Counted from the first letter of the stretch, positions 60,401-63,400 are shown. The stretch is 64,000 nucleotides of DNA from Chrysemys picta bellii (GCF_011386835.1 NC_088807.1:25172001-25236000); one strand, 5' to 3'. Numbers and translations: made by a program. The notes: generated from the letters alone by a model not told the origin.

Positions 60401-63400
60401 CTGGACCGCGGGGAGCTCCCGGCCGTCCCCTCCCCCGTGGAGTTCATGGGCTACATCTACTTTGTGGGCACGGCCATCTTCGGGCCCTGGAGCCACTTCC
60501 GCAGCTACCTCCAGGCGGTGGAGAGCCGGGCCCTGGTGAGAGTCGGGGTGTGGGGAGGGGGAACAGCGCCCCTGGTGGGCACACCTGGTCCTGCGCCTGG
60601 CGGCCTTTCCCCTTTAGCGGGCGCCGGCTCCCCTCTGGCCGCAGGGTGGGGACTGGCTGGCTCAGGCGGGCCGGGGGGGAAACGGGACACACTTGCTAAG
60701 TTACCCTTTGCCCCGCAGAGCCTCCCCTGGCTGCGGAAGGTGTCCCGGAGCCTCCTCCTCTCCATCATCTGCCTCCTCGTCTCCACCTGCGTCGCCCCCT
60801 ACCTGTTCTCCTACTTCATCCCGCTCTACGGCTACCGGCAGCTCAGGAAGTGAGTGTGTGCGTCCCCTCCCCCCCACCCCATTTCCCACCCTAGGGGGCA
60901 GGGGTGAGACCCCACGACCTCCTGCTCCCTCACACCAGCCTCTGGGTCTCCTTCTGCTGCTGCAAGAGCCTCCCAGTGCCCTCAAGGCCCCAGCTGGGGA
61001 GAGAACCCAGGAATCCTGGCTTCCAACCCCCTCTGCTCTAACCCACTAGACCCCCCCTCCACTCACTGAGCCAGGGAGAGAACCCAGGAGTCCTGGCTCC
61101 CAGGCCCCACAGCTCTAACCACTAGACCCACCCTCCCTGCACCTCCCAGAGCTGGGGAGAGAACCCAGGAGTCCTGGCTTCCAGCCCCCTCTGCTCTAAC
61201 CACTGGACCCCATTCCTCCTTGCATTTTCCACTGGTACCTTGATCCACTTGTTGCCCCCTCCGATGCCCAGCATCACCCCTCTGCCCCCCGCGAGAGGTG
61301 CCCCACTACTGCCGTGGCTAAGGAGAGCGGCCCCCAGGCCAGGGTCGGTCTCCGTCTCTCTCTCTCTGTTTCTCACTCCTTCCCCCTTCACTCTCTCTGC
61401 TCCCCCTCCTCGCCCGGGATCCCGCCGGCCTCAGGAGGAAGCGGAAGGCCAGGTAACGGCGGCCCTGGTGTGCGACGGGTCGGGGGCTCATTCGCGGGTC
61501 GCGCCGCGGCTCGGCAAACGGCTCCTCTGAGCCGCGGCCCATCAGCCCCCTCACTCCGTGACTCGCTTGCCCTCTGGCCTTGCCGTCCTGCAGCTGGCTT
61601 GTTGCCGCAGTGGATTATTTGCCCCACCCCCGGCACTGAGGTCCTGGATCTCTGGTCAGGCTTCACTGTCCGGTTGCCACGGCCAGCGGAAGCGTTCGCT
61701 CGGAGGTCTGTGGTTCTCAGTGACTCGGCCATGGCTGGCTCCGTGGCCCTGTGGCTTCTCCCGTGGCTCGGTGGCGAGCTCCCTGAGTCACTCGCTGCGT
61801 GCCCCCTTGGCTGGCTCGCTCCGTGGCTTGGTAGTTGGCTCGCTCTGTGGCTGCCTGGCTTGGTGGCCGACTTGCTCCGTGGCCGGCTTGCTTTGTGGCT
61901 GCCTCGCTCCGTGACTCGGTGGCTGCCTTGCTCCGTGGCTGGCCGGCTTCCTTGGTGTCTGCCTCACTCCGCGGCCGGCTTGCTCTGTGACTCGGTGGCC
62001 GGCTCGCTCGCTGGCTGCCTCGCTCCGTGACTCGGTGGCCGGCTTGCTCCCTGCATGGCACCCTGGTTCTCCACCTGATAGTTTCTCCTTGAATTTCCCG
62101 GGTTCTCCCTCTGCCCACGCCGCCCAGGGGCTTGGCAGTGAGGTGAGTTGAAGGCCGGCCGCGGTGGGAGCCGGGCCCTGCCCCTCTCTGGGAGCAAGGT
62201 TCCCGTGGCCTGACCCCCCACCCTCCCACCCTCCGCAGGTGGCTCCGGGCCTACGAAAGCGCCATCTCCTTCCACTTCAGCAGCTACTTCGTGGGATTCC
62301 TTTCCGAGGCCACGGCCACGCTGGCTGGGGCGGGATTCACCGAGGAGAAGGACAACCTCAAATGGTGAGTAGTGGGGGAGAGAACCCAGGCATCCGGGCT
62401 CCCCTCCCTGCCCCCCACCCACCCGCTCTAACCACTAGACCCCACTCAACTCCCAGGGCTGGGGAAAGAACCCAGGAGTCCAGGCCCCAGCCCCCCTGCT
62501 CTAACCACTGGACCCCACTCCCCTCCCAGGGCTGGGGAGAGAACCCAGGCGTCCTGACTGCTCGCTCTCTCTCCTGGCAGGGACCTGACGGTGTCCCGAC
62601 CCTTGAACGTCGAGCTGCCCCGGTCGATGGTGGAAGTCGTCACCAGCTGGAACCTGCCCATGTCCAGTTGGCTCAACTCCTGTAAGGTCCACTAGGGGGC
62701 GCTGGGGGGAGCGGGGCAGGAGCTGGCTGTGGGGGGAGCTCCCGGCTATTCCATCCCTGATCTCTCCCAGCAGGGGGCGCTGTGGGGAGCAGGGGGGGAA
62801 TCTCCTGGCTATTCCATCCCTGGTCTCTCCCAGCAGGGGGCGCTGTGGGGAGCGTGGGGGGGAAATCTCCTGGCTATTCCATCCCTGGTCTCTCCCAGCA
62901 GGGGGCGCTGTGGGGAGCGGGGGGGGGAAATCTCCTGGCTATTCCATCCCTGGTCTCTCCCAGCAGGGGGCGCTGTGGGGAGCGGGGGGGGGGAAATCTC
63001 CTGGCTATTCCATCCCTGATCTCTCCCAGCAGGGGGCGCTGTGGGGAGCAGGGGGGGAATCTCCTGGCTATTCCATCCCTGGTCTCTCCCAGCAGGGGGC
63101 GCTGTGGGGAGCGGGGGGGGGGGGGGGGAAATCTCCTGGCTATTCCATCCCTGATCTCTCCCAGCAGGGGGCGCTGTGGGGAGCAGGGGGGGAATCTCCT
63201 GGCTATTCCATCCCTGGTCTCTCCCAGCAGGGGGCGCTGTGGGGAGCGGGGGGGGGGAAATCTCCTGGCTATTCCATCCCTGATCTCTCCCAGCAGGGGG
63301 CGCTGGGGGGAGCTGGGGGGGGGGGGAATCTCCTGGCTATTCCATCCCTGGTCTCTCCCAGCAGGGGGGCGCTGTGGGGAGCGGGGCAGTTTGGTAGATT

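Follow-up and report, generated by a model that had tools for sequence, protein, structure and literature searches.

A G-rich minisatellite carrying co-oriented CTCF-type motifs in a PORCN intron of the painted turtle and its relatives

We analysed a window of 64,000 nucleotides from the painted turtle Chrysemys picta bellii (GCF_011386835.1, NC_088807.1:25172001-25236000), in which an intron of PORCN is largely taken up by a tandem array. The features of this intron and of the two exons that border it are as follows, with positions counted from the first letter of the window:

62581-62681, + strand: upstream PORCN exon; codons 62582-62680 encode a 33-residue peptide
62682-63439, + strand: array-bearing PORCN intron, 758 bp, GT..AG, 67.5% G+C
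62686-62704, + strand: donor-proximal CTCF-type site GGTCCACTAGGGGGCGCTG, 18.5 bits, overlapping positions +5 and +6 of the 5′ splice site
62705-62743, + strand: spacer, a diverged part-unit (GGGGGAGCGGGGCAGGAGCTGGCTGTGGGGGGAGCTCCC) that aligns across six species
62744-63334, + strand: nine complete units of 63-72 bp, each with CTCCCAGCAGGGGGCGCTG, a G-quadruplex motif and an acceptor-like run, TCTCTCCCAG followed by CAG
63335-63391, + strand: tenth and last unit, its core broken by an extra G; ends in GAGCGGGGCAG, like the spacer
63392-63439, + strand: unique 3′ end of the intron, with pyrimidine tract and AG acceptor
63440-63516, + strand: following PORCN exon, an exact match to turtle PORCN proteins and present in a spliced contig

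The initial annotation had placed the array within a PORCN intron, and two lines of evidence bear this out. The peptide of codons 62582-62680 is identical to human PORCN 286-318 at 31 of 33 residues (E = 2e-14), and a spliced contig (run X15, record 17) covers 62250-62363, 62580-62681 and 63440-63510 with no more than one mismatch. This contig joins 62681 straight to 63440, so that the 758-bp intron, about 650 bp of which is array, is excised exactly at the predicted sites (donor GTAAGG from 62682, acceptor AG at 63438-63439). The same junction is kept in almost all annotated turtle PORCN isoforms. One predicted sea-turtle isoform lacks the upstream exon, the sole case among the PORCN proteins spanning this region (44 retrieved, from turtles, squamates and the echidna). 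Because splicing uses the normal sites and nearly all isoforms share the junction, we conclude that splicing across the array intron is normal and shows no sign of an effect of the array, contrary to the earlier suggestion that the array might influence it. An alternative exon next to the array, as in CTCF-dependent splicing of the CD45 exon 5 type, was not found: the exons join normally in the contigs, which could miss rare isoforms.

Long open reading frames cross the array, and we searched the exon 62582-62680 and the natural ORF 62782-63750 as separate pieces rather than as a joined exon model. The ORF matched only PORCN proteins, by way of the in-frame next exon, and array-derived proteins were absent from its matches; a hidden coding repeat was ruled out. 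In composition, the intron is skewed towards G (301 G versus 211 C) with a CpG observed/expected ratio of 0.25, and from these values it looks like methylated gene-body DNA lacking CpG island character.

Tandem Repeats Finder placed the array at 62739-63386 with a period of 63 (9.9 copies, 91% matches) and detected a second, higher-order period of 135 (4.9 copies). Cutting on GGCTATTCCATCCCTG delimited 10 units, which start at 62744, 62807, 62872, 62937, 63003, 63066, 63138, 63201, 63267 and 63335 and measure 62-72 bp, the differences in length lying mostly in the poly-G run. These head-to-tail units, within the 10-100-bp range and of high mutual identity, make the array a minisatellite. Two unit subtypes were distinguished, CCCTGATCTC...GAGCAGGGGGGGAATC and CCCTGGTCTC...GAGCGGGG(n)AAATC, and the array reads A G G G A G A G A G in terms of these subtypes. 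Each unit also carries the TCTCTCCCAG-CAG run, which resembles a 3′ splice site. Nine canonical G-quadruplex motifs, one per complete unit, lie on the + strand of the intron, which is the non-template strand of PORCN; their density is about 12 per kb in the intron versus 2.5 per kb across the window.

CTCF-type sites were scored with a position weight matrix modelled on JASPAR MA0139.1 (printed consensus TGGCCACCAGGGGGCGCTA, maximum 24.3 bits), whose scores may differ from those of the deposited matrix. Nine units scored 16.9 bits, with 19-mers starting at 62764, 62827, 62892, 62957, 63023, 63086, 63158, 63221 and 63287, and CCAGCAGGGGGCGCTG occurs exactly nine times in the array, always on the + strand. 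A further motif had been reported 8 nt past the exon donor, and CCACTAGGGGGCGCTG indeed occupies 62689-62704, 8 nt beyond the last exon base (62681). The initial annotation had also noted an extra G in one unit; this is the tenth, which has six G rather than five at 63359-63364, a shift in register that lowers its best score to 1.7 bits. The intron consequently holds 10 strong same-strand sites (nine at 16.9 bits, one at 18.5 bits) and not the 11 consensus motifs first counted, their common orientation on the + strand being correct. The core CpG is present in all 10. Likewise, the spacing of about 65 bp given earlier is a good description of the array, where cores lie 63-72 bp apart, and does not extend to the donor copy, which is 78 bp from the first array core.

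The core matches stood well above background with this matrix. The IUPAC core occurred 13 times in the window versus 0.23 expected, and 33 matches reached at least 12 bits across the whole window versus 5.3 in a Markov null. Comparison with shuffled units had been named beforehand as a test of the motif scores: only 1-2 of 5,000 mono- or dinucleotide shuffles reached 16.9 bits, which rules out a composition artefact and shows that the scores are not an effect of GC content. Eleven independent motifs could also be ruled out, as the sites are tandem copies of which one is broken. The PORCN sites go back to one or two evolutionary events, which tandem duplication has multiplied, the donor copy being a diverged part-unit.

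Relatives of the unit are found elsewhere in the window. A profile of the PORCN units matched 31856-31899 (E = 3e-10), 32784-32739 (E = 8e-8), 22243-22212 and 22179-22135, and the older form of the unit, that of the snapping turtle, gave two matches: 31852-31898, with 94% identity, and 22134-22238, with 75% identity across 106 bp. The second is a pair of tandem units that lie shortly before an SLC38A5-like exon and have the same orientation as that gene. Unit relatives together occupy 22134-22249, 23390-23443, 31852-31942 and 32720-32784, as fragments of 45-110 bp. Several of these have decayed cores: those at 22223 and 32756 show CpG to TpG, and the one at 31878 has a C to T change in its CCA triplet. 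On the spacer and first unit, the contigs of DNA run X1 reached a summed depth of about 7,000-8,000 versus about 45 on the unique flanks, and most of the piled-up contigs carried the older GCTACTCC variant and then ran into unrelated sequence. This high depth, together with the continuation into unrelated sequence, points to a family with many dispersed genomic copies, to which the PORCN unit belongs. An invention specific to this locus was ruled out by the relatives in the window and by the contigs from other loci that pile up on the first unit. Within the PORCN loci of other turtles, no further copies of the family were detected at E ≤ 1e-3. The window also contains a second 63-bp array at 49837-50466, with ten TCCCCTCTAGGGGGCGCC cores; it has the core alone in common with the PORCN unit, and the flanks are unrelated.

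We next compared the orthologous intron across turtles, whose PORCN proteins were obtained by ORF search and whose genomic loci were then compared. Platysternon was left out, its intron being an assembly gap of N. The introns are listed below:

Carettochelys: 289 bp; 2.3 homologous 79-bp units; no site of 9 bits or more
Caretta: 226 bp; 2 units; donor site and one unit site, the other core lost through a 6-7-bp deletion
Macrochelys: 219 bp; 2 units; 3 sites
Mauremys reevesii: 297 bp; 3 units; 4 sites, CpG to CpA in one of them
Gopherus flavomarginatus: 856 bp; 11 units; 9 units of at least 14 bits; CpG to TpG in 5 cores, the donor copy among them
Pangshura tecta: 1362 bp; 19 units; 11 units at about 17 bits; 8 with a 2-bp deletion that lowers them to 9.4 bits
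Chrysemys (the window): 758 bp; 10 units; 10 strong sites, 1 broken

In all turtles compared, the CTCF-type sites lie on the sense strand. The donor-proximal site scores 15.2-18.3 bits in Mauremys, Pangshura, Gopherus, Macrochelys and Caretta and is absent in Carettochelys; the Pangshura donor copy also shows CpG to TpG. The core of the last unit, at 1.7 bits in the painted turtle, reaches 17.0-17.3 bits in each of the other five hard-shelled species. Copy number differs between species (2, 2, 3, 10, 11 and 19 units), which supports the variable part of the earlier proposal of a copy-number-tunable VNTR. Its tunable part fared less well, as the variation looks like drift and concerted evolution, with 3 units in Mauremys and 19 in Pangshura, members of one family. 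Within-species "skips" in the array proved to be collapse artefacts of short-read contigs, and we did not read them as copy-number polymorphism.

The nearest neighbour of a unit came from the same species for 33 of 39 units, identity being 0.93-0.94 within arrays versus at most 0.88 between species, and each lineage has its own unit subtype. This species-wise clustering, together with the state of two or three units in three lineages, rules out one ancient large array inherited by all turtles. Because variants that weaken the core have spread through many units (8 of 19 in Pangshura, 5 cores in Gopherus), individual copies inside the big arrays are not protected. On the accepted tree, in which Cryptodira comprises Trionychia and Durocryptodira, and Durocryptodira comprises Testudinoidea and Americhelydia (PMC8622242), the species distribution indicates that a small motif-bearing repeat predates the hard-shelled crown group. 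The large arrays arose later than this small ancestral repeat.

To examine the two edges of the array, we aligned six hard-shelled species from the donor to the end of the first unit (5′) and from the last unit to the acceptor (3′). Variable columns made up 5 of 50 in the ungapped core versus 46 of 159 elsewhere (one-sided Fisher p = 0.004), and in a four-species version 2 of 51 core columns versus 34 of 160 others (p = 0.002). The edge cores are about three-fold less variable than neighbouring intron columns, and most substitutions within them fall at degenerate or tolerant positions of the matrix. Edge sites reach at least 15 bits in nearly every hard-shelled lineage, the exception being the last copy of the painted turtle. 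The motif is therefore constrained relative to its flanks, in a small sample that comprises three core positions in six species and units subject to gene conversion. We take this as modest evidence that something may read the whole 19-mer, and the conservation of the edge cores favours a bound site.

We lean, with modest confidence, towards reading the array as a G-rich intronic minisatellite that grew on old, sense-oriented CTCF-type motifs, in which the edge sites would be bound and the extra copies would drift as passengers. The ancestor of the hard-shelled cryptodirans, whose crown group is roughly 100-150 million years old, carried the donor-proximal motif and two or three motif-bearing units. 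Since then the number of units has drifted between 2 and 19 through lineage-specific expansion and homogenisation, arriving at 10 in the painted turtle, with unequal exchange or replication slippage as the likely route of expansion. In human cells, double-strand breaks cluster where a strong CTCF site overlaps with secondary structure or a G-quadruplex (PMC11040008), and since each unit carries a G-quadruplex motif on the non-template strand, expansion may have been favoured by breakage of this kind. Because the two edge cores have changed more slowly, we infer that at least one or two of the sense-oriented sites are occupied; the most probable occupant is CTCF, provided that the core CpG carries no methylation. 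A forward CTCF motif halts cohesin arriving from its 3′ side under the convergent rule, and a bound cluster here would stop cohesin coming from that side. The additional copies would be redundant, and their number would not be under selection. In a pond turtle of the same family, CTCF chromatin immunoprecipitation and methylation-linked control of splicing have been shown at another gene (PMC5481183). Occupancy of the PORCN array by CTCF in some tissue seems to us an even prospect, and a tuned insulating or splicing role improbable.

Several observations speak against this scheme. The intron is part of a transcribed gene body and has a low CpG ratio, and CpG to TpG decay is seen in five Gopherus cores and in the Pangshura donor copy; both count against binding, since the low ratio and the decay point to germline methylation, which would disfavour CTCF. 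As regards the scheme as a whole, the last core, otherwise conserved, is the broken one in the painted turtle, and Carettochelys manages without any site. G-runs at the 5′ splice site and pyrimidine-AG runs could, in addition, be conserved for reasons at the level of RNA.

The most probable alternative sees in the array a neutral G-rich minisatellite that descends from a dispersed repeat, its sites methylated and unbound, and ascribes the conservation of the cores to RNA-level constraints, GC-biased conversion or homogenisation. The RNA-level constraints meant here are G-runs acting as intronic splicing enhancers close to the 5′ splice site, and the pyrimidine-AG runs. A CpG observed/expected ratio of 0.25 within a gene body agrees with this account, as does the decay of CpG to TpG or CpA in Gopherus, Pangshura and Mauremys cores and in the dispersed copies at 22223 and 32756. 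It would also fit that all PORCN matches lie on the G-rich sense strand, that the G-quadruplex-prone array resembles classical unstable minisatellites, that unit-like sequence is abundant elsewhere (summed depth of about 7,000-8,000 versus about 45) and that Carettochelys has no core. However, conservation spans the whole 19-mer, including CCA and GCGCTG, and reaches beyond the G-run; the core CpG is kept in most copies, whereas neighbouring CpGs vary among species. Moreover, motifs as strong as the PORCN sites are rarely unoccupied by CTCF in mammals. We consider this neutral account somewhat unlikely.

A more purposeful reading, in which the array is a copy-number-tunable insulator, loop anchor or Pol II pause site built to regulate PORCN splicing or neighbouring genes, draws on the ten strong co-oriented sites spaced 63-78 bp apart, on the retention of the motif in six turtle lineages and on the conserved edge cores. 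A motif-level hint in the same direction comes from Gopherus, where a strong opposing site of 18.2 bits, 2.7 kb downstream, sits at the 3′ end of PORCN and ahead of the following gene; the corresponding position in the painted turtle falls outside the window. Precedents exist in mammals, for example DXZ4 and CTCF-linked VNTRs (PMC3491370, PMC3218863, PMC2848977), and intragenic CTCF has been tied to splicing in a review (PMC8373115). Against this, two members of one family, Mauremys with 3 units and Pangshura with 19, are six-fold apart in copy number, and sea and snapping turtles have 2 copies without a known difference in PORCN. Weakened cores have spread through the arrays, the intron is constitutively spliced with flanking exons that are not among the known alternative ones, and the unit comes from a dispersed family rather than having been built at the PORCN locus for a purpose. 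We regard such a function as quite unlikely. Least probable is a reader other than somatic CTCF, such as the germline paralogue CTCFL/BORIS, which has the motif of CTCF and targets several repeat classes in human cells (PMC5007689), or a lineage-specific factor, for conservation by itself does not identify the reader but the PORCN sites match the full CTCF core.

Returning to the minisatellite with bound edge sites, we put forward as a speculative extension that turtles may possess a class of minisatellites born recurrently from strong CTCF sites overlapping G-quadruplex-prone DNA, in which breakage and duplication would create a natural allelic series of boundary strength; we think this unlikely, if less so than a purpose-built insulator. 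Were such a recurrent origin true, the PORCN intron, with its 2-19 copies and conserved edge sites, would offer a comparative test of site number against barrier strength. If CTCF does bind, a single orthologous intron of a housekeeping Wnt-pathway gene would hold a natural dosage series, from no sites in Carettochelys through 2-4 in sea, snapping and pond turtles to 10-12 in the painted turtle, the tortoise and Pangshura. This series could show how many tandem sites it takes to stop cohesin, and whether clusters within a gene influence its transcription. Without CTCF binding, the array is an ordinary unstable GC-rich minisatellite. A search of the full-text literature returned no turtle study of CTCF-motif tandem arrays, and repeat-borne CTCF sites have hardly been described in non-mammalian amniotes. 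The PORCN array bears on the multiplication of CTCF sites in these animals.

Compared with repeat-borne CTCF sites in general, the PORCN unit is similar in that it recurs with its motif in the window and, by read depth, genome-wide; it differs in that no parent mobile element was found for it, the copies in the window being fragments of 45-110 bp. Human minisatellites of the CEB1/CEB25 type form G-quadruplexes and are unstable, and they share with the PORCN array, where the quadruplexes are predicted, a G-rich unit with at least four G-tracts on one strand and large changes in copy number. The CEB1/CEB25 loci are not known for CTCF cores. Human CTCF-linked VNTRs (SLC6A4 Stin2 and the 1q23.3 tRNA VNTR) are, like the PORCN array, repeats of variable copy number that lie within a gene or close to one and show CTCF motifs or binding (PMC2848977, PMC4041453). 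They are polymorphic within one species and come with reporter or ChIP data, whereas the PORCN array varies between species and its binding is inferred from sequence. The DXZ4 and Firre repeats of the mammalian X have, as does the PORCN array, one CTCF motif per tandem unit in a single orientation, and in both cases the motif persists while the units change rapidly in sequence and in number (PMC3491370, PMC3218863). Their units of 0.15-3 kb form arrays of tens of kb to Mb, as opposed to units of 63-72 bp in an array of 0.65 kb. They are also intergenic or lie in lncRNA genes, with occupancy and orientation-dependent contacts established by experiment, whereas the PORCN array sits in the intron of a coding gene and its CTCF sites are putative. 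The PORCN array belongs with the known CTCF-motif tandem repeats.

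Related copies of the repeat unit that builds the minisatellite array in the PORCN intron were found at four other places in the window:

22134-22249, minus strand, PORCN-unit family copy
23390-23443, minus strand, PORCN-unit family copy
31852-31942, plus strand, PORCN-unit family copy
32720-32784, minus strand, PORCN-unit family copy

Two tandem units of this family lie immediately upstream of an SLC38A5-like exon, oriented in the sense of that gene, and an opposed pair of copies flanks a CpG-rich stretch of ~850 bp. CTCF-type cores also occur in a second minisatellite and as single dispersed sites (bits are scores against a hand-entered version of the CTCF matrix JASPAR MA0139.1):

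49837-50466, plus strand, minisatellite of 63-bp units with ten TCCCCTCTAGGGGGCGCC cores of 14-15 bits
12418, 47943 (minus strand), 54288, 60123 and 63873, single TCCCCTCTAGGGGGCGCC cores

The flanks of the cores in this second minisatellite bear no relation to the PORCN unit. Five other turtles have counterparts of two dispersed cores, 60123 and 63873, at equivalent PORCN positions.

The window holds further repeats, of which the GGATGG-rich one lies upstream of the PORCN-intron array, inside PORCN or adjoining it:

57735-59401, GGATGG-rich minisatellite of 1.6 kb, periods 56/92/104
61824-62050, GTGGCCGGCTTGCTCC-type minisatellite in a PORCN intron, 16/24/40-bp periods (Carettochelys PORCN locus, L001:3449-4361)
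20595-21028, 27413-27824, 31300-31831, 35012-35653, 48323-48745 and 62413-62554, examples among many tRNA-like arrays

The GTGGCCGGCTTGCTCC-type repeat spans ~230 bp in the painted turtle, compared with ~900 bp in Carettochelys. The tRNA-like units (73-77 bp, GGTCTAGTGGTTAGAGC ... GGGTTCTCTCCC) form tandem arrays across the whole window. In summed read depth, their copy at 62454-62555 exceeds the unique flanks by a factor of thousands.

Within the PORCN-intron array, a single extra G in a homopolymer (63359-63364) breaks the core of the last unit. Since the same copy is unbroken in five other species, this G may be a sequencing or assembly error. Separately, a predicted PORCN isoform X3 of Lepidochelys kempii (P0006), known as a model only, would lack the exon preceding the array intron, with its upstream part read in a different frame.

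Finally, the tortoise Gopherus flavomarginatus carries a strong reverse CTCF-type site beyond its array:

L007:17357 (PORCN locus), minus strand, CTCF-type site of 18.2 bits

Situated 2.7 kb downstream of the Gopherus array, in the interval that separates the 3' end of PORCN from the next gene, this site is convergent with that array. Its painted-turtle counterpart would be expected past the window's end.
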